Virus record (IMG/VR): IMGVR_UViG_3300028394_002328
Span: 186,001-250,000 of that record
Length of the DNA: 64,000 bases
Strand: one strand, 5' to 3'
The position numbers and the translations under genes were made by a program. Shown in pieces: positions 21,548-43,063 of this stretch (position 1 is its first letter; each line of letters begins with the position of its first letter). Below the pieces are notes generated by a model, which made no database searches, was not told the DNA's origin, and was given only the letters and a program-made list of their open reading frames with translations.

Positions 21548-21559
21548 CTAAATAATAAT

Positions 21560-23290: not shown

Positions 23291-23305
23291 CAAAAGGAGT
23301 ATATT

Positions 23306-23743: not shown

Positions 23744-23748
23744 TATAA

Positions 23749-24743: not shown

Positions 24744-24749
24744 ACACAG

Positions 24750-29112: not shown

Positions 29113-29844
29113 ATGAAAGATAATTTACAAGATTTAGTTGAACATACATATGGATTAGGTAAGCTAGACCTAATTAAAATCGTGGGTACTAAAACATCAA
29201 CACAGATGTTTGCATTGTCTGAGGACAAAAGCGTTATATTTTCAGGTAATTTTAAAACTCCAATTATTGAGTTTGATGGCACATTTGGTATGCCAAACTT
29301 AAGCAAACTCAAAACAATTTTGGGATTTGAAGATTATGATGAAAATGCTATCATTACAGTTTCTACACAAAAAACTGATGAAGGTGTACAGCCTAGTGCT
29401 ATTTTGTTTGAAACAAAAACTAGTGATTTCGTAAATAATTATAGGTTTATGAAGAAATCAGTAGTAGAAGATAAAATTAAAAGTGTTTCTTTTAAAGGTG
29501 CTACTTGGAACATAGAATTTGAGCCCACAGTAGCAGGTATTTTACGTTTGAAAAAACAGCATCAAGCCAATAGTGAAGAAGAAACTTTTACGGTTAAGGT
29601 TGAAAATGGTGATCTTAAAATTTACTTTGGAGATCCAACTACTCACTCAGGCAATTTTATATTTTATCCACAAGTAACAGGAACGTTGGCTAGATCAATG
29701 ATGTGGCCTATTAAAACTTTCTTGGCAATTATGGACTTGCCAGGTGACAAAACCGTAAGAATTTCTGATCAAGGTGTAGCTGAAATTGTCATTGACAGTG
29801 GACTTGCTATATACTACTATCGTTTACCGGCTCAAATTAAATGA
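29113..29844 (+). CDS. probable DNA polymerase sliding clamp (gp45-like)
   Basis: 243 aa alternating beta/alpha pattern typical of clamps, adjacent to the polymerase; no short diagnostic motif. Confidence 0.6.
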   Translation: MKDNLQDLVEHTYGLGKLDLIKIVGTKTSTQMFALSEDKSVIFSGNFKTPIIEFDGTFGMPNLSKLKTILGFEDYDENAIITVSTQKTDEGVQPSAILFETKTSDFVNNYRFMKKSVVEDKIKSVSFKGATWNIEFEPTVAGILRLKKQHQANSEEETFTVKVENGDLKIYFGDPTTHSGNFIFYPQVTGTLARSMMWPIKTFLAIMDLPGDKTVRISDQGVAEIVIDSGLAIYYYRLPAQIK

Positions 29845-30173
29845 TTAGAATTAACCACTCAGGTGGTGTGCCGTTTTTTCAAAATGATACGTCATACAAT
29901 TTACCATCTTCAACTGGTGCTGTTCAATGGAACGGTAATAGTAAAAAATTTCAAGTAAGCAGCGGTGGTAGTTGGATAGATATTGAAAATTCAATAAATT
30001 TAAATGCTGACCATGACTACCTGATGGTTATGCGGTGGGCTAGAGAAAAAATGCATGAAGAACACGAACTAGAAAGGCTGGCAAAAGAAAATACTACTCT
30101 TAAAGATTTAGTTGACCAACTCAACTACACTAAAGAGCAGATTAAAGTAGTTACAACGCTCTTGAAAGCATAA
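29841..30173 (+). CDS. hypothetical protein with C-terminal coiled coil
   Basis: Coupled ORF (ATGA and TAATG overlaps). Confidence 0.65.
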   Translation: MIRINHSGGVPFFQNDTSYNLPSSTGAVQWNGNSKKFQVSSGGSWIDIENSINLNADHDYLMVMRWAREKMHEEHELERLAKENTTLKDLVDQLNYTKEQIKVVTTLLKA

Positions 30174-31720
30174 TGGAACAAGTAAATCTATCAACATCAC
30201 ACAATCCCGATTGGGCACTATTCTTACCAGCAGTTAGTAGTTTTTATATTGCTGGCTTAGGTAAGCAACGCAATGGCGAACAGTATTTTGACTCAGCAAG
30301 AATTCCTAAAGGTTTTGGTGGTGATGTAGAAAAACTTAATTTTCTTAATAGCAAAGAAGGATTGTACTATTACAAGTGGGGCCTGTATAGTGCAGGTCAT
30401 GCTAACTTAGATACTACTAAAGTTGACTTCAACGAAAGTATTATCCGTGATCGTGAAGCAGGTACTTTCATGCTAGGTGACAGTGGGGGCTTTCAAATTC
30501 TAAAAGGTCAATGGCCTGCTGATTGGAAAGATCCTAACTGTCCCAAAGCAATGATTAAGCGTAAGGCAGTCCTTAATTGGATGGACACATACATGGACTA
30601 TGGTATGTGTCTTGATATTCCTTCGCAATCTCTACGCACATTTCACTTAAAAGATCCAAAGACAGGTAAGTCATTGCATGGCATCAGTACTATTCAAGAG
30701 GCTATTGATGCTACACATATCAATAACAAATATTTTATTGAGAACCGTAATGGTAACTGTAAGTTCTTAAATGTTCTACAGGGTCTTACTCATACTCAAA
30801 GTGATCAGTGGTATGAAGAGATGAAAAAATATTGTGATCCAAATATCTATCCCGAGAATCATTTCAATGGTTGGGCATTTGGGGGACAAAATAAAATTGA
30901 TATTCATCTTACTCTCAAACGTATCGTAGGCATTATTCATGACGGTCTTCTCCAAGAAGGTAAACATGATTTGATTCACTGTTTGGGTACAAGTATCTTG
31001 GAATATGCTGTATTGTTTACAGATATTCAACGAGCGGTTCGCAAATATCATAATCCAAAACTACAGATTACTTTTGACTGTGCCAGCCCATTCTTCAGTG
31101 CGGCTAAAGGACTAGCATATTTCAATACCAGTATTGAGCATAATAAAAAATGGTCCTATAGCATGGAAAAAACCGCAGAGAAAAAATCCTATGCTAATGA
31201 TACTCGCAAATTCCGTGATGCGGTATTACAAGATGGTATCCATAAAGTGTTTACAGATAGTCCTGTAACTGATAGAATGCTGTTAAAGGATCTGTGCTAT
31301 AGGGGTCAAGGATTCATTGGTCAACATGGTAAAGAAACAAAAACTAGTTGGGATACTCTAAGTTATACTCTACTTCAATCTCATAATGTATACCAGCATA
31401 TCTATGCTGTACAAGAGGCTAATCGCAGATATGAACAGGGTGTGATTCCAAAGATGATTATGAATGAAACTTTTGAGCGTATTCGTTTTAGTGAAATTGT
31501 AGATGAAATTTTCTCTCTCAACGACCGCCAAAAGAGTTTGGACTTAATTGATTATCATAGTAGATTTTGGATGCAGATGCAAAGTGGTAGTCAAGGGTTT
31601 AGTGGTAAGAAAACTGTAAACGCTAGAACTATGTTTGATCAATTGTTTACTACTGAAGAACCCAAAGAAGAAGTAATTGAAGATAGTGATGACTTAATGC
31701 TTGAGGTACTAGGAGATTAA
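30173..31720 (+). CDS. dpdA: DpdA-like tRNA-guanine transglycosylase paralogue (DNA 7-deazaguanine insertion)
   Basis: TGT-fold motifs in order: GDSGGFQ, CLDIP, VLQG, WAFGG, IHCLG, FDCASP, SHN; lies in an operon with folE/queD/queE. Confidence 0.8.
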   Translation: MEQVNLSTSHNPDWALFLPAVSSFYIAGLGKQRNGEQYFDSARIPKGFGGDVEKLNFLNSKEGLYYYKWGLYSAGHANLDTTKVDFNESIIRDREAGTFMLGDSGGFQILKGQWPADWKDPNCPKAMIKRKAVLNWMDTYMDYGMCLDIPSQSLRTFHLKDPKTGKSLHGISTIQEAIDATHINNKYFIENRNGNCKFLNVLQGLTHTQSDQWYEEMKKYCDPNIYPENHFNGWAFGGQNKIDIHLTLKRIVGIIHDGLLQEGKHDLIHCLGTSILEYAVLFTDIQRAVRKYHNPKLQITFDCASPFFSAAKGLAYFNTSIEHNKKWSYSMEKTAEKKSYANDTRKFRDAVLQDGIHKVFTDSPVTDRMLLKDLCYRGQGFIGQHGKETKTSWDTLSYTLLQSHNVYQHIYAVQEANRRYEQGVIPKMIMNETFERIRFSEIVDEIFSLNDRQKSLDLIDYHSRFWMQMQSGSQGFSGKKTVNARTMFDQLFTTEEPKEEVIEDSDDLMLEVLGD

Positions 31721-31721: not shown

Positions 31722-31925
31722 ATGCCTTATAAAAATCGTATAGAAACTATTAAACAAAGTATCAAACTATTAGAATCTAGAATTTATTCATACAATGAAT
31801 ATGATGCGGAAACTGTATTTGATATGCGGCGTCAAGTACTTATTTTGAGTACTGAATTGAACAAACTTACTAAATTGCAATGGGAAGAAGAACACGACCG
31901 AGTTAACTTTGAGGATGACCATTAA
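31722..31925 (+). CDS. hypothetical protein
   Basis: 67 aa coupled ORF. Confidence 0.6.
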   Translation: MPYKNRIETIKQSIKLLESRIYSYNEYDAETVFDMRRQVLILSTELNKLTKLQWEEEHDRVNFEDDH

Positions 31926-32375
31926 ATGGAACAAGTATTGCTAGCAAAACAAGAAAAGCGTAATCGTATTAAAGATCAGGCTAAACGCATGATTTGGGTT
32001 ACTTTTCAAAAAGAAGGTATTCACTGTTACCCTTCTGCATCTATTGATGCTAATTTGGCAACAGGTGATGAATATGATGTAAGTTTTTTAGGAACTCCGC
32101 ATCGTCACATTTTTCATTTCAATGTGGCGATTCAAGTATTTCACAACGACAGGGATATTGAATTTATTCAGTTTAAGCGATGGTTAGAGAACCTTTATCG
32201 TGGCACACTTGAACTAAATTACAAAAGTTGTGAAATGATTAGTGATGACCTTTATCAGTCTATTGCTAATCGCTATCCCGACCGTGACATTCATATCACT
32301 ATTTCAGAAGATGGTGAGAACGGTGCCACAATTTACTATAATACAACTAAACCTTATCAACAACTTGCTATTTAA
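31926..32375 (+). CDS. QueD-like T-fold protein, candidate DpdL (CDG decarboxylase)
   Basis: EGIH, LGTPHRHIF (LxxxHRHxF), DIEF, SCEM, SEDGENG; second T-fold protein in addition to the canonical queD. Confidence 0.68.
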   Translation: MEQVLLAKQEKRNRIKDQAKRMIWVTFQKEGIHCYPSASIDANLATGDEYDVSFLGTPHRHIFHFNVAIQVFHNDRDIEFIQFKRWLENLYRGTLELNYKSCEMISDDLYQSIANRYPDRDIHITISEDGENGATIYYNTTKPYQQLAI

Positions 32376-32385: not shown

Positions 32386-32595
32386 ATGGCTAAAATTAAA
32401 TTTCAACCTAATCCCCGTGTTCATGCAATTTTCGATGACCTTGACAAGTACCGCGAATTTTGTGTAGATTATGGATTTAAATTTGATGAAGCAGACCTCT
32501 ACAGCACTAAAAGCTACGTCTATAGGCAATTCACTAAACATCTTTCAGGTAAAACTGTAAAGAGTATATGGGATATTGATACTAAGGCTAATTAA
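32386..32595 (+). CDS. hypothetical protein (MAKIKFQPNP...)
   Basis: AAGGA SD before ATG 32386; shorter than the track ORF starting 32242. Confidence 0.65.
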   Translation: MAKIKFQPNPRVHAIFDDLDKYREFCVDYGFKFDEADLYSTKSYVYRQFTKHLSGKTVKSIWDIDTKAN

Positions 32596-33770
32596 TGCGT
32601 AAACTATTTTACATGGGTCTTGAGCCGTATAAGGCCCGATACACTCTACAACTACAAGAATGGAATGAACGTGTATTTAAGCGGCGTAAGATTAACTATG
32701 TAATCGTACCCGGCGAAACACTAACTACTGACCAATCTATTGTTACTGGTCAGGTCCTAGATGCACATGGTCGCACATACTTTGGTATGAGCCAATTAAT
32801 GAATCTAGTTAAGTTGATGAAGGCAGGTGAATGCAGTAATGAAGATGTTATATACTTTGAGGACATGTTTCAACCAGGAATCGAGAGTCTACCCTATATC
32901 CTCAATCAAATCAGTCCTGAGCATTGCCCTCGCATTTTTGTTCGCTGTCTTGCTCAGTCTATTGATCCAGATGATTTTGTTCATGTCTGGGGTATGTCAG
33001 AGTGGATGGGCCATTATGAAAAAATGGTTGACTCGTTCGTAGATGGTGTACTTGCTACTAACGAAGAAATGGTAATGCATATGAAGGTAGCAGGTTGGAG
33101 GGCTCCAATCTATAATATTTCAGGGCTTGCATTTGGTCGTGATGAAGTACAAAGCCGTGTTGAGCAAATTAAAAACTTCAATGATCGGCGTATGCGTGTA
33201 GTGTTCAGTTCACGTTGGGATCAGGAAAAACAACCTGATTTTTATATGGATCTGATTGAAGCATATCATGCCTCACATCCAAATCATAATACCGAATTTG
33301 TTATCTGTAGCGGTGGTAGTCTTAAGTCAAATAACCAATCTTACATGAGTAGGACTCGCAAATTTCAAGAAAAAGGTTTGCTAACGGTTTATGAAAACTT
33401 AGAAAAAAATGCTTATTATAATATCCTTAATGATAGTAGGGTTGTCTTTAATTGCGCCCTTCAAGATTGGGTTTCCAACACAGTCAGTGAAGCAGATAGT
33501 CTTGGGTGTAATGTTTTATTCCCTGCTTATCGGTCTTTCCCTGAGACTTTTTCTAATGACCATACAAGACTTTATGTACCTTGGTCAATAGAAGATGCAC
33601 TAGCAAAACTAGAAAAATTGTTGGCTAAACCTCACGTTAATATTGGTAAGATTAGTAAATATAATGATGGTACTATTGACCGTATTTGTGACATTCTACA
33701 AGATAAAGGTGATAGTATGTTGAGAATGTCTACTGACTATCGTAAATATCTCAGAGAAAATAAGTATTGA
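32595..33770 (+). CDS. GT-B fold glycosyltransferase
   Basis: VVFSSRWDQEKQP and VFNCALQDWVSNTVSEA...GCNVLFPAYRSFPE, the GT4-like nucleotide-sugar binding region. Confidence 0.75.
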   Translation: MRKLFYMGLEPYKARYTLQLQEWNERVFKRRKINYVIVPGETLTTDQSIVTGQVLDAHGRTYFGMSQLMNLVKLMKAGECSNEDVIYFEDMFQPGIESLPYILNQISPEHCPRIFVRCLAQSIDPDDFVHVWGMSEWMGHYEKMVDSFVDGVLATNEEMVMHMKVAGWRAPIYNISGLAFGRDEVQSRVEQIKNFNDRRMRVVFSSRWDQEKQPDFYMDLIEAYHASHPNHNTEFVICSGGSLKSNNQSYMSRTRKFQEKGLLTVYENLEKNAYYNILNDSRVVFNCALQDWVSNTVSEADSLGCNVLFPAYRSFPETFSNDHTRLYVPWSIEDALAKLEKLLAKPHVNIGKISKYNDGTIDRICDILQDKGDSMLRMSTDYRKYLRENKY

Positions 33771-33837
33771 TAAATACTAATGTCACACAAAGGTGACAAA
33801 ATGTCAAAACAAAACCATCACAACGGAGGGTTATCAA

Positions 33838-34512
33838 ATGTCGTACAATAAAACCAAAACAGATCCTGAACTAGGACTATTAGTACATGAATATCTAGTA
33901 AAGATGGGAGTTGAAACTCCTGTTATTTCAAACGGTATTGATCGTAAAGAAAAGATTGATAAAATTGAGAATCATTTTCGTGAGATTATGGGGATTCTCG
34001 GCCTAGACTTAACTGATGATAGTCTAATAGAAACACCTAACCGTGTTGCTAAAATGTATGTAAATGAAATTTTTTGGGGACTCGATTTTGAAGCATTCCC
34101 AAAATGTACTACAGTAGACAATAAAATGCACTATAATGAAATGGTGGTTGAACGTAATATCAACGTTCAAAGTAACTGCGAACATCATTTTGTAATCATT
34201 GATGGATTAGCAACTGTAGCATATGTACCAAAAAGAAAGGTATTAGGTCTAAGTAAAATTAATCGCATTGTAGAATACTTTAGCAAGCGCCCACAAATTC
34301 AAGAACGGTTGACTGAACAGATTTTCTATGCACTACAATTTATCCTTGAAACAAATGATGTTGCGGTTATGATTGATGCCCAACATTATTGTGTCAAAAG
34401 CCGAGGTGTAGAAGATACAGGTAGTAGTACTGTTACTACTAGGCTTGGCGGTGGATTCAAATCTGATCCTGAAGTTCGTAATGAATTTTATCAGATTGCA
34501 AGGATGCGTTAA
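33838..34512 (+). CDS. folE: GTP cyclohydrolase I
   Basis: ETPNRVAKMY, SNCEHHF, GLSKINRIV, RPQIQERLT, HYCVKSRG; GGAGG SD before ATG 33838. Confidence 0.95.
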   Translation: MSYNKTKTDPELGLLVHEYLVKMGVETPVISNGIDRKEKIDKIENHFREIMGILGLDLTDDSLIETPNRVAKMYVNEIFWGLDFEAFPKCTTVDNKMHYNEMVVERNINVQSNCEHHFVIIDGLATVAYVPKRKVLGLSKINRIVEYFSKRPQIQERLTEQIFYALQFILETNDVAVMIDAQHYCVKSRGVEDTGSSTVTTRLGGGFKSDPEVRNEFYQIARMR

Positions 34513-34637
34513 TGTTAACTATATTGACCTTGATTGTAATTGTTGCTATAACTTATATTATGTTTTTTAAAACTACAATCAATAGTAATTGCAATGGAAA
34601 TTGCAATCAAGGTCGCAACTGTACATGTAAGGTATAA
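34512..34637 (+). CDS. 41 aa membrane-anchored Cys-rich peptide (…CNGNCNQGRNCTC), not in the ORF track
   Basis: TAATG coupling to folE; hydrophobic N-terminus and four Cys. Confidence 0.6.
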   Translation: MLTILTLIVIVAITYIMFFKTTINSNCNGNCNQGRNCTCKV

Positions 34638-34639
34638 AG

Positions 34640-34876
34640 ATGGGATTTAAAAAACCATTAGAATTAAGTACAGTCGTTTATCAGATTAGCGCGGCTGGAA
34701 GAGAACTAACTAGTCCATATAACGATGGATTTACACAATGGGAAATCAAAAAAGAATTATATTACATTAAGTTTCTTTTAGATGATATAATTGAACGATC
34801 TGGTACGTTTAATGGCGAAGAGGAATTCTTAAAAGAAGAATCTCAAAAAAGAATGATCAACATACTAAAAAGGTAA
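34640..34876 (+). CDS. hypothetical protein
   Basis: 78 aa ORF in operon. Confidence 0.65.
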   Translation: MGFKKPLELSTVVYQISAAGRELTSPYNDGFTQWEIKKELYYIKFLLDDIIERSGTFNGEEEFLKEESQKRMINILKR

Positions 34877-34880
34877 TAAA

Positions 34881-35084
34881 ATGAAAGAATTTGTGCTTAA
34901 AGATATGAATCAATACACAGTTAGAGTTAAGAAAAATAGGTGTTTGAGACCACAAGAGTTGACTCATATTGAGTTTATCCAAGAAAGTAAAAACGATAAA
35001 GGTGAAGTAGTAGATACTTCAACCTATCAATTTTTCTTAACTGACAGTGAAATTAAAACTCTAGTAGCCAATTTGGTTGAATAA
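34881..35084 (+). CDS. hypothetical protein
   Basis: 67 aa ORF in operon. Confidence 0.6.
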   Translation: MKEFVLKDMNQYTVRVKKNRCLRPQELTHIEFIQESKNDKGEVVDTSTYQFFLTDSEIKTLVANLVE

Positions 35085-35085
35085 T

Positions 35086-35631
35086 ATGGCTAAGTTTTAT
35101 TCAACCAAAACTTATGGTAATGACAGAGGATTAAGTTGTTGTTTTAGACAATGGCGAGCTAAACACAGTCATTGTAGTACATTACATGGATACAGTATTG
35201 GTATTAAATTAGTATTTGAATGCGAAACATTGGATGACAAAAACTGGTGTATGGACTTTGGTGGACTAAAAGAATTCAAAGCATGGGCTGATTATATGTT
35301 TGACCATACACTAATTATTGCTGAAGATGATCCTCATCTAGAATTTTTCAAGCAAATGGCATTGATTGACACAAACTGGACTTTGCCCGAAACCGGTCCA
35401 GATGAAATGCGAGTTGATAGAAATAATTTCGAGCCATACCAAAGAGGCTCTCTATGTGATTTACGCATTGTAGAAGGTGTAGGTTGTGAGATGTTTGCTA
35501 AAATGGCATATGACAAAATGGCTGAGTTGTTAGACGGTGGTAATATGCGATATCCCATTAACCCTAATGTAAGAATTAAAAGCGCCGAGGTTTTCGAGCA
35601 TGGAGCCAACTCAGCTACCTACGAGGGTTAA
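35086..35631 (+). CDS. queD: 6-carboxy-5,6,7,8-tetrahydropterin synthase QueD
   Basis: SHCSTLHGYS, MDFGGLK, FDHT, GCEMFA, VFEHGANSA. Confidence 0.88.
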   Translation: MAKFYSTKTYGNDRGLSCCFRQWRAKHSHCSTLHGYSIGIKLVFECETLDDKNWCMDFGGLKEFKAWADYMFDHTLIIAEDDPHLEFFKQMALIDTNWTLPETGPDEMRVDRNNFEPYQRGSLCDLRIVEGVGCEMFAKMAYDKMAELLDGGNMRYPINPNVRIKSAEVFEHGANSATYEG

Positions 35632-35782
35632 ACTTTGGCGATTATGGAGCAAGGCATTGGGAGAAAAGTCCGGTGCCACGGATCAAGAAAGTGACCTAAT
35701 AGCTTTGGTTAGAACTTGTATTGTGATATCATATATAATTACAAATATGTTTATCATAGCAGGGATTATACGACATTGGTAA
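35600..35782 (+). CDS. small membrane protein
   Basis: WRLWSKALGEK...D.IALVRT followed by a hydrophobic helix. Confidence 0.55.
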   Translation: MEPTQLPTRVKLWRLWSKALGEKSGATDQESDLIALVRTCIVISYIITNMFIIAGIIRHW

Positions 35783-35800
35783 TTAATTTAGGAATTTAAA

Positions 35801-35989
35801 ATGAGTGATGTTAGAAATCGCATGGCAGAATTAATGGAACCTATTGACAAGCAAATTATGATGTGCGATAATAGGGAAGATTTGCTAATGTTAGCCTGTG
35901 CTATGTTGACTTCAGTTAAAACGATATTTGACCAAGAGTTAGGTAAAAAAGCCCGTATCCAATTATTTAAAGATTATATAGATGAGTAA
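35801..35989 (+). CDS. hypothetical protein
   Basis: 62 aa ORF with AGGA SD. Confidence 0.6.
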   Translation: MSDVRNRMAELMEPIDKQIMMCDNREDLLMLACAMLTSVKTIFDQELGKKARIQLFKDYIDE

Positions 35990-36833
35990 TATTAAGATAA
36001 GCGAACTGTTCTATTCCATACAAGGAGAAGGTCGTTATATGGGGGTGCCTAGTGTGTTCCTTCGCACATTTGGCTGTAATTTTACCTGTGATGGTTTTGG
36101 TATGCCACGCGGAGGAACAAGTATTGAACGAATTCAAGTTGGATTGTTACATGAAGGAAATCCTTATAAAAATTATAAAGATTTGCCCCTTGTAAGTACA
36201 GGTTGTGACAGTTATGCAAGTTGGGATCCAGCATTTAAAGATTTGAGTCCTGTACTTACTACTGATGCTATCGTTAATCGCATTATGGAAATTCTTCCAT
36301 ATAATGAATGGCGTGATGAACATTTGGTTATTACAGGTGGAGAACCATTGCTAGGTTGGCAAAAACAATATCCTGATCTATTAAATCATCTTAAAATGCA
36401 TGGTTTAAAAGAAATTACTTTTGAAACAAATGGTACTCAAAAACTAACTTCAGAATTTAAATCAGCATTAAAAGAATGGAGCAAATGGTACAATAGAGAA
36501 ATTACATTTAGTGTTAGTGCCAAACTGCCTTGTAGCGGTGAAATATGGGAAGATGCTATTAAACCTAAGGTAGTATGTGAATATGAACAATATGGCACTT
36601 CCTATCTAAAGTTTGTTATTGCTACAGAACAAGATTTTGCTGATGCCAAAAATGCTATTGCTGAATTTCGTGGTGCAGGATTTAAAGGACATGTATATCT
36701 AATGCCAATTGGTGGTGTGGAAAGTATTTACTCTATGAATAATAAAAATGTAGCCATGCTAGCAATGAAGCATGGACTAAGATACAGCGATAGACTCCAG
36801 GTACCTCTGTTCAAAAACGAATGGGGTACTTGA
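35982..36833 (+). CDS. queE: 7-carboxy-7-deazaguanine synthase QueE (radical SAM)
   Basis: ISELFYSIQGEG, FLRTFGCNFTC...CDS, VITGGEP, FETNG, SVSAKL, RLQVPLF. Confidence 0.92.
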   Translation: MSNIKISELFYSIQGEGRYMGVPSVFLRTFGCNFTCDGFGMPRGGTSIERIQVGLLHEGNPYKNYKDLPLVSTGCDSYASWDPAFKDLSPVLTTDAIVNRIMEILPYNEWRDEHLVITGGEPLLGWQKQYPDLLNHLKMHGLKEITFETNGTQKLTSEFKSALKEWSKWYNREITFSVSAKLPCSGEIWEDAIKPKVVCEYEQYGTSYLKFVIATEQDFADAKNAIAEFRGAGFKGHVYLMPIGGVESIYSMNNKNVAMLAMKHGLRYSDRLQVPLFKNEWGT

Positions 36834-38173
36834 TGAGGACGTATGATAAACGAATTGGTTTTTTAGTTAGTTTCCAAACACTAGTACCTCATGGTGGTAT
36901 AGGACAATTCGCTAAAAGTTTCTGCGAATTGATGGATAGTCATAATATTAAAGTTGATATTATTACTGACAAAGAACCAAAAAATAATGAGTTTGTAAAC
37001 TCATTAAAAGCAAATATTGTTTATCCTACTGAGTCATTCACATACACAGATCATAGTAATATCTTTATGTATGGTGATACCTTTTGCTATGAACGAATGG
37101 CTAACTTTCGCAACGCAATAATTAAAGCCACAACCAATAACCTATATGACGCATTAATTTGTAACACATATGAAACTATACAAGTTGCTAGTACAATGGG
37201 TCTTGAAGATGTAATTCAAATCATTGCCTATACTCATTTAGAAAGTCAAATCTTTAAGGATACTAAAAATCCTTTCTTACATAGTACCAATGAAATGATG
37301 CGTAATCAATTAGAAATGAATGGATTGTATGTAGGAACACAAAGCAAATTCAATCAAATTTCAATGAGCAATAGCGCATGGCATCTACCTATTCCAATTA
37401 CTGAGCGTGGGTTACTAGAAGAACATCATAAACCACGTGAAGGTGTATTGTTTATTGGTCGTTGGGAAGAAGGTAAAAATCCCGAAACATATTTAGAGTT
37501 GATTGAAAAAACTAAGTTACCTGCGAGGGTAATGACTAATGCCAATGGTGCAAAAAAGTTTGAAGAACGCTTTAAAAAGATAGGCGTAACTGATTATAAA
37601 ATTGCTGTTAGTATTATTGGTAAAGAAAAAGTAGATTTCATTACTAGTTGTAGAGTAGCATTCAATCCTAGTACAGTAGAAAGTTATGGTATGGCTTTCT
37701 ATGAGCAACATATTCAATTACCTACAGTTGTTTTAGAAAATCAACGTTGGACTAATAACTTTGATAAAAATCATTTCTTTACTGTAAATAAAAAGAACAT
37801 GGTTGAAACTGTATTAGATTTATACAACAATGTTCCTGATGCTAAAACATGGTATGCTAATAATATATTAGAAGTATATCAGAGTAAAGAGAATGATGTA
37901 TTTCACAAATGGAATGAATGTTTTAACAAGTTTACTAGTAAACAATCAAACAGTAATACCGCAAAAATATGTGAAGAAACTACTGTAAAGTATATTGATT
38001 TTACTAATAGTTTAGGTCGTAGATTATTGTGTATTGACGATATTAAATCTGTATTGACAAACAAACATAAATTCCGTATAATATACACAGATAATGATAC
38101 ATACTTATCTAAAGATCCAACATTTGAACCAGTAGAGGAAGTAACAGGCTTAAGCCTATTTGAAGGATTATGA
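36833..38173 (+). CDS. GT-B fold (GT4-like) glycosyltransferase
   Basis: PHGGIGQF N-terminal loop, LFIGRWEEGKNP, PSTVESYGMAFYE; TGATG coupling to queE. Confidence 0.78.
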   Translation: MRTYDKRIGFLVSFQTLVPHGGIGQFAKSFCELMDSHNIKVDIITDKEPKNNEFVNSLKANIVYPTESFTYTDHSNIFMYGDTFCYERMANFRNAIIKATTNNLYDALICNTYETIQVASTMGLEDVIQIIAYTHLESQIFKDTKNPFLHSTNEMMRNQLEMNGLYVGTQSKFNQISMSNSAWHLPIPITERGLLEEHHKPREGVLFIGRWEEGKNPETYLELIEKTKLPARVMTNANGAKKFEERFKKIGVTDYKIAVSIIGKEKVDFITSCRVAFNPSTVESYGMAFYEQHIQLPTVVLENQRWTNNFDKNHFFTVNKKNMVETVLDLYNNVPDAKTWYANNILEVYQSKENDVFHKWNECFNKFTSKQSNSNTAKICEETTVKYIDFTNSLGRRLLCIDDIKSVLTNKHKFRIIYTDNDTYLSKDPTFEPVEEVTGLSLFEGL

Positions 38174-38988
38174 AAAAAGTATTAATAACAGGTAGTTCAG
38201 GATACATTGGCAGTCATCTTACTAATCTATTAAAAGATGAATATGAAGTACATGGACTTGATCGTGTTGAACCACAAGTAGCACCACATACATTTTATCA
38301 TTGTGACATTAACCGTCAGTTTAACTTAGATGAAGAGTTTGATGCTGTAGTACATTTAGCCGCTCTAGTTAATGTAGGAGAAAGTGAAAAGCAACCTATT
38401 CAATACTACATTACTAACCTAAATGGTACTATGAATGTAGTTAATAAGATAAAAACTAAAAACTTTATTTTTTCTAGTACCGGTGCTGCACAAGACTGTA
38501 TAAGTGCATATGGTATTAGTAAGCGAGCGGCAGAAGATGTAGTAAGGTCGTATTCTGAAATGGTTAGTATGGACTATACTATCTTTAGATTTTATAATGT
38601 CATTGGTAGCACAGTAGTTAATCCTACTAACCCAGATGGGTTATTTTACAATTTAATTAAAGCTCGGGCGACTGGTCAATTTACTATACATGGTAGTGAT
38701 TATAATACTAGTGATGGCACTTGTGTTAGAGATTATGTTCATGTAGATGAGATTTGTAATTCTATTAAATTGGCAATTGAACGGCCAGCAAATCAAACAG
38801 AAGCATTAGGTCATGGTAAAGGATATACTGTTAAAGAAATGGTAACTATCTTTGAAAGTATTAATAATTGTAAAATCAATGTGAAGACAGGCCCTCGTAG
38901 AAAGGGTGATATTGAACATTATGTACTTAAGAACCCATCATCTTACATGCATGAGTTGTATAATATTGGTCAACTACTAAAGATTTAA
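38170..38988 (+). CDS. NAD-dependent nucleotide-sugar epimerase (GalE-like SDR)
   Basis: ITGSSGYIG, HLAALVNVGES, FSST, YGISK (YxxxK), FRFYNV, DGTCVRDYVHV. Confidence 0.88.
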   Translation: MKKVLITGSSGYIGSHLTNLLKDEYEVHGLDRVEPQVAPHTFYHCDINRQFNLDEEFDAVVHLAALVNVGESEKQPIQYYITNLNGTMNVVNKIKTKNFIFSSTGAAQDCISAYGISKRAAEDVVRSYSEMVSMDYTIFRFYNVIGSTVVNPTNPDGLFYNLIKARATGQFTIHGSDYNTSDGTCVRDYVHVDEICNSIKLAIERPANQTEALGHGKGYTVKEMVTIFESINNCKINVKTGPRRKGDIEHYVLKNPSSYMHELYNIGQLLKI

Positions 38989-38990: not shown

Positions 38991-40349
38991 TTACTTTAAA
39001 CCTGCACTGACCCAAGGATCAGCAATTACTAGAGTATCATCTCTCTGCATTACATTGCTATAATCATGTGCGATAATATCATTACTAAATCCTAATTTAG
39101 TACCGGTTGCTGTAACTGATTTAAGTGTTTTATAGAAATTAGTATATTGACGATATTGCGGATCTAATGGACTGCCTTCGTCAATACTATACATCATATC
39201 TATAATCATTTCATCATAGTCAGGATCTAATTCTTCTAATCGTTCCATAACTACCTGATCAAACTTTTCAACTCCCAATTGAATTGGTTGTTTAGTAGTT
39301 TCTATAAACTTAGGTAAGTGTGGGTTATTAGCATTTTTCTCGCAATAATTAAGAAATGCTAAGAATGGATTTTTAGCGGTAGAGATATCGCCATTCTCAG
39401 GTATTAATACTTTAATTACTGGACCTTCTTCTTTAGCAAAAACATGTGCGTCTGTACCATGACCGATATAACTATAGCCTAATTTATTCATATAATCATT
39501 AAGCATGTTGACATGTTTATTATAGTCAAACTCGGTTAATTCTTGCTCTTCAATTTTTCTAGCAACGATACCTTTATTCTTTATTAATTTCTCTTCATCC
39601 CACCTAACTGGGTTAATCATTGGATACAAGTATTTGGTATCGGTGGCTCCGATATCAAACAGACTTCTCGGTGGAACTAGATGTTGTTTTCTAAGTTTAT
39701 CAAACTTTTCAGCATCTACTACTATTGGTTCCCCAATAGTTACTTGACCAATCGCAACTGCAGGGCCATTACCAGTTCTAACAATACCAACCGTTCTACC
39801 AACATATGGTCTAAGACTGTCAGTTTTTCTAGATTCGTATTTCTTTTTGCCGTCAACAATTAAACTAGCATAGTCAGTATTGCCATCACTTCTGACATTG
39901 ATGCCAATAGTTGGTTTATTGTCTGTATTTTCTGTTATATTTTTTTCTGATGGCTTGACAATCTCTGCACTTGATAAATCTAATGGTCCTGCTATCCAAT
40001 ACTCATCAATATCATCAGATTCATACTTCCACGCATTAGGATCATAGTTAGCACTAGTCATACCCTTTGTTCGCATAAAAGTTTTATGTCCTGGTATTGG
40101 ATATATTTTATTAGATATTTTACTAGCATTAATTCTAATTAATGTATCTCCTGTCCATCTACTAATATGTTCTTTATCAGTAAAACTATTACCGGGTATC
40201 ATTTTCCCTTCTGATTCTATATAGTGAGCATAACCTCTTTTCACTGGTAATTTTTTAGAATCAATATACTTTTGAAATTGATTTCCTTCTACCCACTTAT
40301 ATAGATAGGTGGGTACTTGAACTGATTCTAATAACTCTTTAATACGCAT
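38991..40349 (-). CDS. tripartite protein: ART-like domain + ASCH domain + Ser/Thr kinase-like domain
   Basis: LYK...GNSFT...DEY (ART-like, weak); GINV...LIVDGKKKYESR...AIGQV (ASCH); IGHGTDAHVF, VIK, MERL, HDYSNVM, VIADP (kinase); MRIKELLE start. Confidence 0.65.
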   Translation of the reverse strand: MRIKELLESVQVPTYLYKWVEGNQFQKYIDSKKLPVKRGYAHYIESEGKMIPGNSFTDKEHISRWTGDTLIRINASKISNKIYPIPGHKTFMRTKGMTSANYDPNAWKYESDDIDEYWIAGPLDLSSAEIVKPSEKNITENTDNKPTIGINVRSDGNTDYASLIVDGKKKYESRKTDSLRPYVGRTVGIVRTGNGPAVAIGQVTIGEPIVVDAEKFDKLRKQHLVPPRSLFDIGATDTKYLYPMINPVRWDEEKLIKNKGIVARKIEEQELTEFDYNKHVNMLNDYMNKLGYSYIGHGTDAHVFAKEEGPVIKVLIPENGDISTAKNPFLAFLNYCEKNANNPHLPKFIETTKQPIQLGVEKFDQVVMERLEELDPDYDEMIIDMMYSIDEGSPLDPQYRQYTNFYKTLKSVTATGTKLGFSNDIIAHDYSNVMQRDDTLVIADPWVSAGLK

Positions 40350-41950
40350 TAATGCTTCAATAATAGAGTGCCTAATACACCAGGGTCATTTGCCGTTAAA
40401 TCAGGCTCCCCGGGGGCAACAATAACATTCCACTTCATGGATTTATTATTTTTACCCTTAGTATTCCATTCATCATAACTTAGAATACTATTTTTGCTTA
40501 TACCATACTTATCGGCGAGGCGCTGTTTTAGTTCAGGTAATTCATCAGGTATTACTTGCCATTGACCTTCAGGTCCTTTAACTAAATTCTTTTTAGAATC
40601 CTTAACTAATAGGTCATAAAACAAACTACTAGGAACGATACGACTATTCTTAGTTGTGTCTAAGTTTGGATCATTTCTCTTAATTTGTTTTTCTTGGCTA
40701 GTACTTGCGCCTTCACTCCAATTAATAATAAAGTTGCTAGGCTTACTAGCCATTGCAGCCTTTGCTACTTTAGTATAAGCATAAAACTTAACATCAGGTA
40801 ATGAGTTTGCAAGGTCAAATGCCATGTCCATATACTCAGGGCTAAAGAAGTCTCCAGCATCATGCCAACGAATACTTACTGAATAACCACCTTTTTTACC
40901 CTTTGCTTCTTCTTTACTAATTTCTTGTGTTAGTTGTTCAAAGAACTCATCAGGATGATTTAGTAGATATGTAAGTATACGACCATCGCTTAACCACGGA
41001 CCAGCGAATTGAACTTTACCGCCCTTCATAGCAAAGCAATCTACTTTACAACTACCAGCACCTGGACATGTATTAACAACAATTAACTCATTTGTATTTT
41101 CATCTAGTGCGATACCAACTAGAGCAGCAAATCCAATGTTAAAAAATTGTTCTTGTGCTCCATCACTATGCTTCATCTTCTCATTCTTTTTAAGAAGTGA
41201 TTTTGGTCTTTCCTTTAACCCTGCTTTAATAGCGTCAGTATTATATTTTTTACCGTCAGCATTATAGTATCCAACTACTGAACTACGATGGACATAAGGT
41301 AAATTATATTTGTCTGTTTTCTTCTTTTCTTGATTACGAATACGGTCTAGATAATCTGTTAACTCTTGACCTTTTAATTCACGGGTGCTAGCAGGTAGTG
41401 CTGTTGCTTCCGCCACACCTTGTTCGTGTAGTTTTTTGTTAGGATCTCTAACATCAGGAAAATCCCATTTATTGGTTTGTGAAAATTCTTCTCTAGCTTC
41501 TCTTCTAGACATGCCATATATTTTTTCAAATTCTCGATCAGATAATTCAGGATCATCAAGGTCCATGTCTAACTCAGCCATCTTGCTTTCCGACACATTA
41601 ACTACGGGTTTATTTCCGTAAACTTTTCTATCTTTACCTATTATTCTTCCGGTTTCGCTTCTACTACCAATGTGCTTACTGGCTAAACTTTGACCAGGTT
41701 TTACTCTTACACGATTTGGCGGTAATTGTGTAATCTTTCCACCTTTATTTAAAAAGTCTGCTACAGCATCATCGGTTTCTTTACTAAAATCAGATTTCAT
41801 CTTGAAATCTTCATCTACTTCCTGTTCGGGTTCAGGTTCCTCACCTTGTGCGGATTTAGCAATAAATTGCTGAGGGGTCATTATTTGGATACCTTCAGGA
41901 GCACCTGGTAATTCTGGTTCAACTCCCTCAAATAATTCTTTAATATTCAT
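40349..41950 (-). CDS. modular protein with C-terminal GP88-like (radical SAM-like) domain
   Basis: TCPGAGSCKVDCFA, IRWHDAGDF, FYAYTK; MNIKELFE start and QGVAE linker. Confidence 0.65.
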   Translation of the reverse strand: MNIKELFEGVEPELPGAPEGIQIMTPQQFIAKSAQGEEPEPEQEVDEDFKMKSDFSKETDDAVADFLNKGGKITQLPPNRVRVKPGQSLASKHIGSRSETGRIIGKDRKVYGNKPVVNVSESKMAELDMDLDDPELSDREFEKIYGMSRREAREEFSQTNKWDFPDVRDPNKKLHEQGVAEATALPASTRELKGQELTDYLDRIRNQEKKKTDKYNLPYVHRSSVVGYYNADGKKYNTDAIKAGLKERPKSLLKKNEKMKHSDGAQEQFFNIGFAALVGIALDENTNELIVVNTCPGAGSCKVDCFAMKGGKVQFAGPWLSDGRILTYLLNHPDEFFEQLTQEISKEEAKGKKGGYSVSIRWHDAGDFFSPEYMDMAFDLANSLPDVKFYAYTKVAKAAMASKPSNFIINWSEGASTSQEKQIKRNDPNLDTTKNSRIVPSSLFYDLLVKDSKKNLVKGPEGQWQVIPDELPELKQRLADKYGISKNSILSYDEWNTKGKNNKSMKWNVIVAPGEPDLTANDPGVLGTLLLKH

Positions 41951-41970: not shown

Positions 41971-41999
41971 TTGACTTTATTGTGCAACGGTGTTACACT
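41971..41999 (+). promoter_or_regulatory. sigma70 promoter for uvsE, overlapping a divergent late motif
   Basis: TTGACT-17 nt-TACACT; GATAAATA on the minus strand at 42008-42015. Confidence 0.7.
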
Positions 42000-42031
42000 A
42001 CATAGACTATTTATCACTTTGGACTTTTAAC

Positions 42032-43063
42032 TTGACAAATCAATCTATTAAACGTATTGGCTTTGCCTGCAAATTCTCAGAAATCAACAAGAAAGGAGAA
42101 ATCTCTAGCGTTGAAGGGCTTAACACAGGTGGCACTACACTTACCTTTCTTAAAAAAGCAAAACGTGAAGTAGCCGAACAAAAGATGTGGGATGTAATGG
42201 AAAAGAACATTACCAACACTCATAATTTGGTCAAACGTATTGCTACACTAGATCCTGCACTAAGAATGGTTAGGCTAACTAGTGATATGATGACTGGATA
42301 TACACATGGTGATTGGGAATACTTTTACAAACAAGGTGATGTTCGTAGGCGAATGGAAGAACTTTTTGCGCCAATTGGTGACACGGCAAGGGATAATGAT
42401 GTTAGGCTTTCTTTTCATCCAGGTCAGTTTACAGTTCTTGCAAGTGCTAGTGAAGAAATCATAAATAACTCTATAAAGGAATTTGAATATCATGTTGACA
42501 TGGCTCGGTGTATGGGATACGGCAAGGAATTCCAAGACATTAAAATCAACGTACACATCTCGGGTAAACGCGGTCCCCAAGGTATCAAGGACGTGGTTGG
42601 ACGCTTATCCCCCGAAGCAAGAAATTCAATCACCATTGAAAACGACGAAATCTCATGGGGTATCGAGGCTAGCCTAGAGTTGGTAGATACCTGTGCTTTG
42701 GTTTTCGATCTACATCATCATTGGGTAAAAACAGGCGAGTATATTAACGCAAATGATCCACGTATTCAAAAAATTATTGATAGCTGGCGCGGTATTAGGC
42801 CTACTCTTCACTACTCTGTTAGCCGTGAAGACTATCTTATTAATCATGCCCCAGACACCCTACCCAATCATCATGCACTGATTGAGTCTGGTAGTAATAA
42901 ACAAAAACTCAGGGCTCACAGCGACTATTATTGGAATGATGCGGTGAACGATTGGGCATTGACTTTCTATGATAAATTTGATATCATGTGCGAGAGCAAG
43001 GCGAAAAATCTAGCTAGTTTTAAACTACTTGATAGGTACAAACAAAAGGTAAGTTATGCTTGA
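42032..43063 (+). CDS. uvsE: UV-damage endonuclease UvsE/UVDE
   Basis: KRIGFACK, VRLTSD, RLSFHPGQF, IENDE, FDLHHHW, HSDY, DIMCESKAKNLA; probable TTG start at 42032. Confidence 0.9.
   Translation: MTNQSIKRIGFACKFSEINKKGEISSVEGLNTGGTTLTFLKKAKREVAEQKMWDVMEKNITNTHNLVKRIATLDPALRMVRLTSDMMTGYTHGDWEYFYKQGDVRRRMEELFAPIGDTARDNDVRLSFHPGQFTVLASASEEIINNSIKEFEYHVDMARCMGYGKEFQDIKINVHISGKRGPQGIKDVVGRLSPEARNSITIENDEISWGIEASLELVDTCALVFDLHHHWVKTGEYINANDPRIQKIIDSWRGIRPTLHYSVSREDYLINHAPDTLPNHHALIESGSNKQKLRAHSDYYWNDAVNDWALTFYDKFDIMCESKAKNLASFKLLDRYKQKVSYA

Follow-up and report, generated by a model that had tools for sequence, protein, structure and literature searches.

Predicted glycosyltransferases within the 7-deazaguanine gene cluster of a giant freshwater phage

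A giant freshwater phage keeps two predicted sugar-transferring enzymes (GT1 and GT2) and a predicted sugar-nucleotide epimerase inside the gene cluster inferred to replace guanine in its DNA with 7-deazaguanine. We analysed a stretch of 64 kb, hereafter the window, from its 335-kb contig. A GT1-family gene sits beside the same deazaguanine gene, dpdL, in many unrelated phages, which suggests an undescribed sugar-bearing deazaguanine in DNA. We found no report of such a base. The DpdL branch of phage deazaguanine modification is already known; what is new is the comparative evidence linking GT1 to it.

Organisation of the cluster

An earlier note on the sequence alone had described two GT-B glycosyltransferases and a GalE-like epimerase interleaved with deazaguanine genes, and this observation holds: every gene it named is present at the stated coordinates on the + strand (Table 1). 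The overlaps that it gave were read directly from the sequence. The QueE stop TGA (36831-33) overlaps the ATG at 36833-35 (TGATG), and the GT2 stop and GalE start form ATGA at 38170-73. In addition, the stop of a conserved 69-aa ORF overlaps the GT1 start as TAATG. The TGATG coupling of GT2 to queE is particular to this genome and a few close relatives: QueE ends within 200 nt of GT2 in 5 of 45 loci, and 0.4-0.8 kb lies between the two genes in the six relatives that we inspected. The run of + strand genes ends with the epimerase, and the next genes (38991-41950) are on the - strand.

Table 1. Features of the deazaguanine cluster, in window coordinates, with the evidence for each predicted identity.
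Coordinates	Strand	Feature	Evidence
30173-31720	+	DpdA-like DNA-guanine transglycosylase (TGT superfamily), 515-aa subfamily shared with PA5oct gp168	No Pfam or PDB sequence hit; TGT signature motifs LGDSGGFQ (D103), LNVLQG and FDCASP (D302) conserved in a 13-sequence family alignment; hhalign against the BUDD/ACP17/BUCT 'queuine tRNA-ribosyltransferase' family, E=9.4e-5, probability 59%, motifs in register; atlas look-alikes include TGT and DpdA clusters; PA5oct gp168 matches the family HMM at 3.8e-148
31722-31925	+	67-aa ORF between the DpdA-like gene and DpdL	Conserved at 32-99% in some relatives; no Pfam family
31926-32375	+	DpdL (QueD paralogue; proposed 7-carboxy-7-deazaguanine decarboxylase)	LGTPHRHIF, exactly the published motif LxxxHRHxF (PMC10516641), which is present in 126 of 131 family hits; 52% identical to ACP17 gp125 and 31% to phiST CGPG_00067; phrog_17812
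32386-32595	+	Conserved 69-aa ORF	119 HMM hits in related loci, none in the GenBank phages tested; no Pfam or NCBIfam family
32595-33770	+	GT1 (391 aa): GT-B, GT4-like glycosyltransferase	PF00534 E=5.7e-5, below Pfam's gathering score; 30 of 61 family members hit PF00534; R207 and K212 invariant, QDWVSxTLLEA motif conserved
33793-34512	+	FolE, GTP cyclohydrolase I	PF01227 5.4e-61; NF006824 328 bits, above its cut-off
34640-35084	+	Two small ORFs (78 and 67 aa)	Partly conserved in relatives; no Pfam family
35077-35631	+	QueD (6-carboxy-tetrahydropterin synthase), phage type with CxxxHGY; likely start ATG at 35086	PF01242 9.8e-15; motif CSTLHGY; HGY in 76 of 79 family hits, including phiST and ACP17 QueD
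35600-35989	+	Two small ORFs (60 and 62 aa)	Partly conserved; no Pfam family
35982-36833	+	QueE (7-carboxy-7-deazaguanine synthase, radical SAM)	TIGR03365 1.4e-16 and four other QueE models, all below their cut-offs; 48% identical to the annotated QueE of BUCT-ZZ01
36833-38173	+	GT2: GT-B, GT4-like glycosyltransferase with a ~75-aa C-terminal extension; alternative in-frame start ATG at 36821	PF00534 2.7e-3; HGGIGQF, GRWEEGKNP (R210, K215) and E283-x7-E291 conserved; two types, about 45% and about 70% identical to the window copy; 40% identical to the copy in the BUCT-ZZ01 module
38170-38988	+	Short GalE-like NDP-hexose 4-epimerase (extended SDR, 272 aa)	PF01370 2.2e-35; TIGR01179 6e-48, below its cut-off; phrog_540; GSSGYIG, S103 and Y114-x3-K118 present

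The earlier note had seen no hydroxymethylase or thymidylate-synthase-like gene in the window. Consistently, no thymidylate-synthase, hydroxymethylase or QueC family matched any of the roughly 70 window ORFs scanned with Pfam, the remaining ORFs being too short to encode one, and a tblastn search with a ThyA-like query found nothing in the window. The same query found no such gene in the BUCT-ZZ01 loci that we retrieved. These carry both GTs and cover all but ~3.7 kb (roughly 98%) of that genome, whose annotation lists only ThyX. The search in the window covers only 64 kb of the 335-kb contig.

Predicted folds of the glycosyltransferases

Both glycosyltransferases gave confident GT-B models with AlphaFold2 (GT1: pLDDT 95.2, pTM 0.92; GT2: pLDDT 86.2, pTM 0.86). 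Their nearest solved folds are retaining GT4 enzymes, and neither T4 AGT nor BGT, the enzymes to which the earlier note had compared them, is among the 50 best fold hits. The top PDB hits of GT1 in Foldseek are BshA, MshA, SenB, PimA and glycogen synthase (E 4e-12 to 1e-9), and its top hits in BFVD are an unnamed 370-aa viral protein (TM 0.82/0.86) and the ACP17 'glycosyl transferase family 1' protein. The PDB hits of GT2 are WlaC (6eji, 9e-12), BshA, sucrose-phosphate synthase, BGluT, TarM and MshA. The diphosphate-binding R/K and the EX7E-type motifs are conserved. These nearest solved folds act on small molecules, lipids or glycans, not on DNA, and neither GT is basic overall (pI about 6.1).

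GT1 lies beside DpdL in unrelated phages

The arrangement is not a chance juxtaposition, since it recurs in 124 retrieved IMG/VR and MAG loci and in unrelated cultured phages. GT1 belongs to a large, phage-restricted family: the only five hits in 185,579 genomes are on MAG contigs, four of which carry the phage block. In the jumbo-phage family of the window, DpdL lies within 1 kb upstream of GT1 in 101 of 114 loci, and the DpdA-like gene within 3.5 kb upstream in 104 of 107. GT1-family genes also sit beside DpdL in Pseudomonas PA5oct, Sinorhizobium Phosso, Acidovorax ACP17, Xanthomonas BUDD and X1, and Synechococcus BUCT-ZZ01, and 2.7 kb from it in Burkholderia BCSR5. GT1 lies next to DpdL in at least six independent phage lineages. 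BUCT-ZZ01 shares only this module with the window (its PolB is 27% identical).

The linkage is found again in metagenomic contigs whose GT1 is only 31-41% identical to the query: the two genes are adjacent in four (loci L135, L136, L138 and L139) and about 1.4 kb apart in a fifth (L137). In another contig with a GT1 39% identical (P0151), in which DpdL could not be scored, GT1 shares 5.8 kb with PTPS and FolE genes. By contrast, the most distant GT1 relative examined (L140/L141, 26-30% identical) shows no Dpd gene within 5.5 kb. GT1 stays 75-82% identical where the DpdA-like protein falls to 34-52%, and its acceptor-side N-domain is as conserved as the donor side.

Sugar-nucleotide tailoring genes are also embedded in the cluster. 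The GalE-like gene directly follows GT2 in 35 of 39 loci, but GT2 and the epimerase are linked to the cluster only in this phage family and in BUCT-ZZ01. A sister clade places deoxy/amino-sugar biosynthesis genes between GT1 and FolE, namely a dehydratase/epimerase and a DegT aminotransferase, to which some members add a sugar C-methyltransferase, an SDR and a B12 radical-SAM enzyme.

A model of deazaguanine glycosylation

The earlier note had proposed that a mono- or disaccharide is added to a deazaguanine derivative, with no characterised example known, and our analyses support this reading in part. The gene order, the recurrent linkage of GT1 to DpdL and the confident GT-B models are direct results of the analysis, whereas the activities of the enzymes and the product are inferred, in the absence of chemical data for any carrier of the module. 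We regard the following scenario as somewhat more likely than not. FolE, QueD and QueE would make 7-carboxy-7-deazaguanine from GTP (by homology), which DpdL would convert to 7-deazaguanine or a close derivative, following a published but unproven proposal. The 515-aa TGT-like protein would then exchange guanine in phage DNA for that base, as inferred from its conserved catalytic motifs. From gene linkage and predicted fold, GT1, a retaining-type enzyme, would transfer a sugar from an NDP-sugar onto the deazaguanine, most likely after its incorporation in DNA, as T4 does with hmC. In this phage, GT2 would add a second sugar and the GalE-like epimerase would supply the donor, for example UDP-Gal from UDP-Glc. 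The result would be a mono- or disaccharide-bearing deazaguanine that shields DNA from restriction and from modification-sensing defences.

Several precedents are compatible with this scenario. PA5oct DNA resists enzymes whose sites contain G, through a modification that has yet to be identified (PMC12191111), GT4-type enzymes glycosylate phage DNA bases (PMC13326640), and a GT4-type enzyme, HuiG, glycosylates the 2-amino group of a 7-deazaguanine natural product (bioRxiv 10.64898/2026.04.15.718813). The acceptor atom nevertheless remains unexplained. The pathway is the DpdL branch without QueC or QueF, and its proposed product has only C-H at position 7, with no hydroxyl or amino handle. One must therefore assume a C-glycosylation, an N2-glycosylation or a still unknown 7-substituent, and no GT4 C-glycosyltransferase is known to us. 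Furthermore, phiST, the only DpdL phage with measured DNA (100% dDG), lacks GT1, so DpdL does not require GT1.

Alternative explanations

The main alternative, which we consider possible but unlikely, is that GT1 works on the free deazaguanine base or a nucleotide-level intermediate. The sugar would then be a biosynthetic handle added before incorporation, or the product a soluble glycosylated 7-deazapurine as in huimycin or dapiramicin. The best solved-structure neighbours of GT1 are indeed small-molecule GT4 enzymes (BshA, MshA, SenB and LmbT), HuiG (a PF13439 GT) N-glycosylates a free 7-deazaguanine, and DpdL plus DpdA alone did not give dDG in E. coli (PMC10516641). DpdL clusters also repeatedly hold nucleotide-level enzymes: a PRTase in BUCT-ZZ01, HIT in clade B, MazG in phiST, and a phosphoesterase plus a dNMP kinase in locus D479. 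However, this fold similarity is generic for GT4, a DpdA-like transglycosylase accompanies GT1 in nearly all loci scored and TGT pockets are tight for the base, and phiST makes dDG without GT1. A soluble metabolite also offers no obvious benefit that would keep GT1 the most conserved gene of the block.

The remaining alternatives seem very unlikely. The GTs could glycosylate another modified base (5-hmC, 5-hoC or 5-hmU) made by genes outside the window, their position reflecting only a shared nucleotide-metabolism neighbourhood. GT4-like GTs do glycosylate 5-hydroxycytosine in phage DNA (PMC13326640), a ThyA-like gene lies about 8.5 kb downstream of GT1 in four loci (L034, L060, L064 and L065) and between QueE and FolE in phage MA9V-3, and the window covers only 64 kb of a 335-kb genome. 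Yet the searches for thymidylate-synthase-like genes in the window and in the retrieved BUCT-ZZ01 loci were negative, GT1 is adjacent to DpdL specifically in many unrelated backbones, and the PA5oct restriction pattern points to G. A role of the GTs in modifying the host envelope, a glycan, or phage or host proteins is suggested by some database names of close homologues ('glycosyltransferase involved in cell wall biosynthesis'), by the glycan-building role typical of GT4 enzymes, and by L140/L141, where a distant GT1 relative lies outside any recognisable Dpd context. It is at odds with the conserved adjacency to DpdL across lineages that share nothing else, with the phage restriction of the family, and with the strong conservation of the acceptor domain across hosts as different as Pseudomonas, Synechococcus and Xanthomonas. 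Least likely, FolE and the PTPS-family enzyme could also feed a pterin, from which GT2, with the SDR, would make a pterin glycoside, as cyanobacterial BGluT does with tetrahydrobiopterin. The fold hits of GT2 include tetrahydrobiopterin glucosyltransferases (9v0l at rank 4, TM 0.57/0.70, plus 9v0w, 5ze7 and 5zer), GT2 directly follows folE in BUCT-ZZ01, and the host of this phage, Synechococcus elongatus PCC 7942, makes biopterin glucoside. But the similarity is no better than to dozens of other GT4 enzymes, the SDR is a GalE-type extended SDR and not a sepiapterin reductase, QueE, DpdL and a TGT-like gene define a deazaguanine route, and the window family and the other carriers are not known cyanophages.

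Comparison with related systems

Among the closest known systems is the DpdL/dDG branch of Cellulophaga phage phiST (Cui et al. 2023, PMC10516641), with which the cluster shares FolE, QueD of the CxxxHGY type, QueE, DpdL with LxxxHRHxF and a TGT-superfamily transglycosylase; no QueC was seen. The DpdA-like protein belongs to the PA5oct gp168 subfamily, not to the 259-aa DpdA3 of phiST, and phiST lacks GT1, GT2 and the NDP-sugar epimerase. The final base is therefore expected to differ from plain dDG. The T-even DNA glucosyltransferases (T4 alpha-GT and beta-GT, T6 second-sugar GT) and the GT4-like GTs of glycosylated 5-hydroxycytosine phages (PMC13326640) are also GT-B enzymes encoded next to base-modification genes. 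There, separate enzymes add a first and a second sugar, and the sugar identity varies between relatives. Their acceptor is a hydroxyl on a modified cytosine made by a thymidylate-synthase homologue, a gene that we did not find here in the regions searched.

HuiG, a GT-B enzyme, and the dapiramicin GTs act on free bases in actinomycete secondary metabolism, in clusters lacking DpdA; dapiramicin carries a disaccharide. The tRNA queuosine glycosyltransferases QTMAN/GTDC1 and QTGAL glycosylate a 7-deazaguanine derivative already in a nucleic acid, and QTMAN is a GT4-like GT-B enzyme. Their acceptor is the cyclopentenediol of queuosine; the cluster has no PF12038 match and no queuosine side-chain genes, although one QTMAN cluster appeared among the atlas look-alikes of GT1 at rank 44. 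Finally, GT2 and the GalE-like gene were not seen in the block of the Pseudomonas jumbo phage PA5oct (Wroclawvirus), whose DNA carries a modified G, but this phage shares the same block with the window: a split PolB, a clamp-like protein, the DpdA-like gp168, the GT1-family gp167, DpdL gp166 and QueE gp162.

Organisation of the cluster

The analysed window comes from a 335-kb viral contig (IMGVR_UViG_3300028394_002328), of which the retrieved locus L009 is a 100% identical copy, and the same stretch is found in many freshwater metagenomes. Between a family-B DNA polymerase (PolB) and a switch to minus-strand genes lies one uninterrupted run of genes on the + strand, which includes the deazaguanine genes, two glycosyltransferases (GT1 and GT2), and a GalE-like epimerase. 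The observation made in the earlier note, that the glycosyltransferases and the epimerase are interleaved with the deazaguanine genes, is confirmed, and family searches support the gene names used there. FolE scores above the curated cut-offs and QueD above the Pfam cut-off, whereas QueE and both glycosyltransferases match only below their cut-offs. The overlaps that the note gave for queE/GT2 (TGATG) and GT2/epimerase (ATGA) are in the sequence. GT1 is similarly coupled (TAATG) to the basic 69-aa ORF that precedes it, which is conserved throughout the jumbo-phage family (119 hits) but was not found in the other GT1-carrying phages. A megablast of the region against GenBank phages found nothing.

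Coordinates of the features in the window and in related loci
Sequence	Coordinates	Strand	Feature
Window	87-2351, 57533-58765, 62605-63195		ClpB-like AAA+ chaperone, ClpX-like ATPase with a zinc finger, and ClpP protease
Window	7150-16575		Series of Gly_rich_2, Laminin_G_3 and fn3 proteins
Window	17780-25985		Run of GNAT acetyltransferases, Amidoligase_2 protein, SNase-like nuclease, PP-loop ATPase and glutamine amidotransferase
Window	21560-23290		Amidoligase_2 protein
Window	24732-25343		TilS-N-like PP-loop ATPase
Window	25368-25985		Class-I glutamine amidotransferase (GATase)
Window	26319-29033		Family-B DNA polymerase (PolB)
Window	29113-29844	+	Clamp-like 243-aa protein
Window		+	110-aa ORF
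Window	30173-31720	+	515-aa protein (putative DpdA)
Window		+	67-aa ORF
Window	31926-32375	+	149-aa protein (DpdL)
Window	32386-32595	+	69-aa ORF
Window	32595-33770	+	GT1
Window	33793-34512	+	FolE
Window		+	Two small ORFs
Window	35077-35631	+	QueD
Window		+	Two small ORFs
Window	35982-36833	+	QueE
Window	36833-38173	+	GT2
Window	38170-38988	+	GalE-like protein, 272 aa
Window	38991-41950 (- strand), 41990-43063, 45258-46262, 52456-53784		Convergent minus-strand genes including a GP88-family protein and a weak ASCH-domain match, followed by a UvdE UV endonuclease, a 5'-3' exonuclease and an ATP-dependent DNA ligase
L001 (Synechococcus phage BUCT-ZZ01)	7093-7554		Phosphoribosyltransferase (PF00156) between QueE and QueD
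L092 (sister-clade phage)	11200-20352		Sugar biosynthesis genes between GT1 and QueD/QueE
L149 (Chryseobacterium phage MA9V-3)	1599-2723		374-aa ThyA-like gene between QueE and FolE
L146 (Vibrio phage Bakedbeans gp176)	5227-6378		383-aa protein with DpdL as its C-terminal part
L142 (PA5oct)	1-3060		DNA polymerase split by a Hef-like homing endonuclease gene

The deazaguanine pathway

The set of genes for CDG synthesis (FolE, QueD, and QueE) is present. QueE matches five QueE models below their cut-offs and is 48% identical to the annotated QueE of BUCT-ZZ01. QueD has CxxxHGY, as do the QueD proteins of phiST and ACP17. The 149-aa protein carries LGTPHRHIF, i.e., the LxxxHRHxF motif (in place of CxxxHGH) by which Cui et al. 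2023 (PMC10516641) defined DpdL, a QueD paralogue. DpdL is the proposed 7-carboxy-7-deazaguanine decarboxylase of Cellulophaga phage phiST, whose DNA has all G replaced by 2'-deoxy-7-deazaguanosine. The protein is 52% identical to ACP17 gp125 and 31% identical to phiST CGPG_00067, and the motif holds in 126 of 131 relatives.

The 515-aa protein has no Pfam TGT or DpdA match, and PDB sequence searches gave nothing useful for the protein, for its family profile, or for the BUDD-type DpdA profile. Even so, its family conserves the classic TGT motifs DSGGFQ, QG, and FDC. An hhalign comparison of the single sequence with a three-sequence DpdA alignment was uninformative (probability 1.5%), and only a family alignment matched the 'queuine tRNA-ribosyltransferase' family of BUDD, ACP17, and BUCT-ZZ01 with the motifs in register (E=9.4e-5, probability 59%). 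It also has TGT and DpdA look-alikes in the protein atlas. We read it, at moderate confidence and from sequence alone, as the putative DpdA of this system. The 243-aa ORF was considered as a DpdA3 candidate and rejected because it has no similarity to phiST DpdA3 and its relatives are annotated as a sliding clamp in Phosso and as a structural protein in PA5oct.

No QueC, QueF, or thymidylate-synthase-like protein was found among about 70 window ORFs. We considered the PP-loop protein and the GATase located upstream of PolB as a substitute for QueC or Gat-QueC, but rejected both: the former is a TilS N-domain above its cut-off (TIGR02432), and the latter is present only in the closest relatives.

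Glycosyltransferases and epimerase

AlphaFold2 models built on family alignments are confident (pLDDT 95.2 for GT1 and 86.2 for GT2), and both are predicted two-domain GT-B folds with Rossmann-like domains. Their nearest solved structures are retaining GT4 enzymes: BshA and MshA (E about 1e-11), SenB, PimA, and glycogen synthase for GT1, and WlaC (9e-12), BshA, sucrose-phosphate synthase, BGluT, and TarM for GT2. GT2 conserves the donor-binding R210 and K215 and an EX7E motif (E283-x7-E291), while GT1 conserves R207, K212, and a variant QD291...E motif with Asp as the first acid. At the sequence level the two proteins are divergent families of their own. They score 23.2 and 17.7 bits against the gathering cut-off of 26.4 of Pfam Glycos_transf_1, although 30 of 61 GT1-family members match it at E<=1e-3. 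In PDB sequence searches, the GT1 profile hit only WlaC, weakly, and GT2 gave nothing useful.

The analogy with T4 alpha-GT and beta-GT drawn in the earlier note is not supported by these comparisons. Neither T4 enzyme is among the 50 best PDB fold hits of GT1 or GT2, there is no PHROG match, and a cyanophage 'DNA alpha-GT' appears only at rank 13 in BFVD, with a generic score. The overall charge of the glycosyltransferases gave no indication of DNA binding. The QTMAN_N domain (PF12038) of the tRNA-queuosine mannosyltransferase was found neither in GT1 nor in any of the 61 family members. Structures of the pteridine glycosyltransferase BGluT are among the GT2 fold hits (ranks 4, 13, 41, 43, and 47), with scores like those of many other GT4 enzymes, and are absent from the GT1 top 50. 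The epimerase keeps the NAD-binding motif (GSSGYIG) and the catalytic Ser/Tyr-x3-Lys (S103 and Y114GISK118), but it is a shortened GalE: it scores 163 bits against a cut-off of 262 for the full-length equivalog model TIGR01179, and has 272 aa against about 332, with a loop deletion and a short C-terminal domain.

Linkage between GT1 and DpdL

The comparative data, which were beyond the reach of the earlier note, show that GT1 is linked to DpdL. The nearest GenBank phage, Synechococcus phage BUCT-ZZ01, shares with the window only DpdL, GT1, FolE, QueD, QueE, and GT2, at 38-63% identity. Its polymerase is 27% identical and, apart from a 27%-identical epimerase and a 27%-identical exonuclease, nothing else matches. 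The module therefore moves as a unit. Using a profile of 61 diverse GT1 sequences, we found GT1-family genes beside DpdL in ACP17 (gp124, between the DpdA-like gp123 and DpdL gp125), BUDD, X1, Phosso (annotated there as a glycosyltransferase), PA5oct (gp167), and BUCT-ZZ01. In BCSR5, the GT1 gene lies 2.7 kb from DpdL.

A search for related loci with the diverse alignment returned only close relatives, so the distant contexts were obtained by searching for contigs that encode GT1 relatives. Contigs whose GT1 is only 31-41% identical to the query again show DpdL adjacent (loci L135, L136, L138, and L139) or about 1.4 kb away (L137). L136 and L137 also carry FolE and QueE, L137 carries QueD as well, and L139 carries QueE. 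The contig of another relative (P0151, 39% identical), on which DpdL was not scored, holds PTPS, FolE, and GT1 within 5.8 kb. One distant relative (L140/L141) shows no Dpd gene in 5.5 kb. In 124 IMG/VR and MAG loci of the window's own family, DpdL lies within 1 kb upstream of GT1 in 101 of 114, and the DpdA-like gene lies within 3.5 kb upstream in 104 of 107.

GT1 is the best conserved protein of the block: it stays 75-82% identical where the DpdA-like protein drops to 34-52% and PolB to 57-65%, and its acceptor-side N-domain is as conserved as its donor side. Scans of genome contigs found no cellular homologues of GT1 or GT2. Among 185,579 bacterial and archaeal genomes, GT1 relatives appear on only five MAG contigs, of which four carry the phage block and the fifth is a fragment. 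DpdL phages without a GT1 gene near DpdL also exist, namely the phiST group, RHph_I1_18, Ahp1, and Bakedbeans (a list that leaves out Roos, as well as D479 and MA9V-3, which were inspected only through their annotation). GT1 is therefore an add-on to the DpdL branch rather than a requirement for it. In Bakedbeans, DpdL appears as the C-terminal part of a larger protein (gp176), which may be a fusion with another pathway enzyme.

Sugar-nucleotide genes

GT2 is followed directly by the GalE-like gene in 35 of 39 loci. It comes in two types, about 45% and about 70% identical to the window copy, and in all six relatives inspected it lies 0.4-0.8 kb after QueE. A sister clade (PolB about 60% identical) lacks GT2 and carries instead, directly after GT1, a full-length epimerase/dehydratase and a DegT-type aminotransferase (L092, L029, L052, L063, L071, L085, and L089). 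L092 and L029 add an NDP-sugar C-methyltransferase and a short-chain reductase, whereas L092, L071, and L089 add a B12-binding radical-SAM enzyme. All these genes lie before FolE and QueD, between GT1 and QueD/QueE. Variable NDP-sugar tailoring genes nested inside the deazaguanine cluster are what one would expect if GT1 delivers a lineage-specific sugar to a constant acceptor.

A proposed pathway and its alternatives

The mechanism to which we commit is that CDG is made by FolE, QueD, and QueE, DpdL processes it, the DpdA-like enzyme puts the base into DNA, GT1 adds a sugar, GT2 adds a second one, and the epimerase supplies the donor. The gene content, the motifs, and the linkage of GT1 to DpdL are results of the analysis, but only the first step of this pathway rests on well-characterised homology. 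The remaining steps, including the presence of a deazaguanine base in virion DNA and the transfer of sugars to it, are inferred from motifs, predicted fold, and gene linkage. The weak point is chemical, because 7-deazaguanine has no heteroatom at position 7. The substrate may not be plain DG but dCDG or an unknown 7-substituted form. Alternatively, the electron-rich pyrrole carbon may be C-glycosylated, for which no GT4 precedent is known to us, or the 2-amino group may be N-glycosylated, as HuiG does on a free 7-deazaguanine. The latter would place the sugar in the minor groove, unlike nearly all known phage hypermodifications. The present evidence does not discriminate between these three options. 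The interpretation offered in the earlier note, that a mono- or disaccharide is added to a deazaguanine derivative, is thus partly supported: gene linkage strengthens it considerably, but in the absence of chemical evidence it remains an inference.

The most serious alternative, although we regard it as unlikely, is that the glycosyltransferases act on the free base or on a nucleotide precursor. Their fold neighbours are small-molecule glycosyltransferases, and DpdL clusters repeatedly contain genes that hint at a nucleotide-level route for deazaguanine: a phosphoribosyltransferase in the shared module of BUCT-ZZ01 (PF00156, 3e-13), MazG in phiST, HIT in clade-B relatives, and a phosphoesterase and a dNMP kinase near DpdL in D479. 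Glycosylation of a modified pyrimidine made elsewhere is very unlikely, since the fetched BUCT-ZZ01 loci, all but ~3.7 kb of that genome, show no ThyA-like gene and the restriction pattern of PA5oct implicates G. Against that, a ThyA-like gene does sit near some relatives' clusters, i.e., between QueE and FolE in MA9V-3, with homologues (34-35% identical) about 8.5 kb downstream of GT1 in one sub-clade of the window's family (L034, L060, L064, and L065). It could be an ordinary thymidylate synthase or a hydroxylating paralogue. A pterin-glycoside role for GT2 is suggested only by the generic fold hits to BGluT, and a cell-envelope or protein target does not explain the conserved pairing with DpdL.

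Full-text literature searches on deazaguanines in combination with glycosylation, DpdA, or PA5oct found no report of a sugar-bearing deazaguanine in DNA and no description of a glycosyltransferase associated with DpdL. A 2026 genome-mining preprint on 7-deazapurines does not cover phages. A study of END nucleases shows that PA5oct has a modified G and lists QueE and PTPS genes, but did not determine the base. The modified G of this relative is indirect support for a deazaguanine base in virion DNA.

Implications

All sugar-bearing DNA bases known so far in phages are pyrimidines (hmC, hoC, and hmU derivatives), and deazaguanine modifications are known only with small 7-substituents. The cluster described here differs from the known Dpd-type systems in being extended by glycosyltransferases. 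A glycosylated deazaguanine would be a new chemical class of DNA base and a new substrate class for GT-B enzymes, and could also explain why DpdL plus DpdA of ACP17 failed to reconstitute a product. A broader reading is possible, although somewhat less likely than not: GT1 would define a widespread, phage-specific class of DNA glycosyltransferase that decorates 7-deazaguanine in DNA, giving the first glycosylated purine-type base in any genome. The attachment might then be a C-glycosidic bond at C7 or C8 or a link to the 2-amino group, and the sugar would diversify between lineages, with a hexose plus a second hexose here and amino- or methyl-deoxysugars in the sister clade. In this view, the base would be common in freshwater jumbo phages and present in cultured phages such as PA5oct.

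The gene pair is abundant, with at least 8000 near-identical protein clusters and 820 cluster representatives at 50% identity. It also occurs in phages under study for therapy, such as the PA5oct-like Pseudomonas phages, whose modified G is targeted by END nucleases but is chemically undefined. The modification would affect restriction, CRISPR, and glycosylase defences, as well as the sequencing, both PCR and nanopore, of a large group of environmental phages.

Genomic surroundings

The run of genes just upstream of PolB, which includes the rejected PP-loop and GATase candidates, could be a second modification or peptide-ligation system. Further upstream, the Gly_rich_2, Laminin_G_3, and fn3 proteins lie in a stretch of 42-48% GC, against 33-36% in the modification cluster, and are probably fibre or decoration proteins. 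The ClpB-like, ClpX-like, and ClpP proteins together make a full Clp set in a jumbo phage. In PA5oct, the Hef-like homing endonuclease gene splits the DNA polymerase at the position syntenic with the intact PolB of the window.
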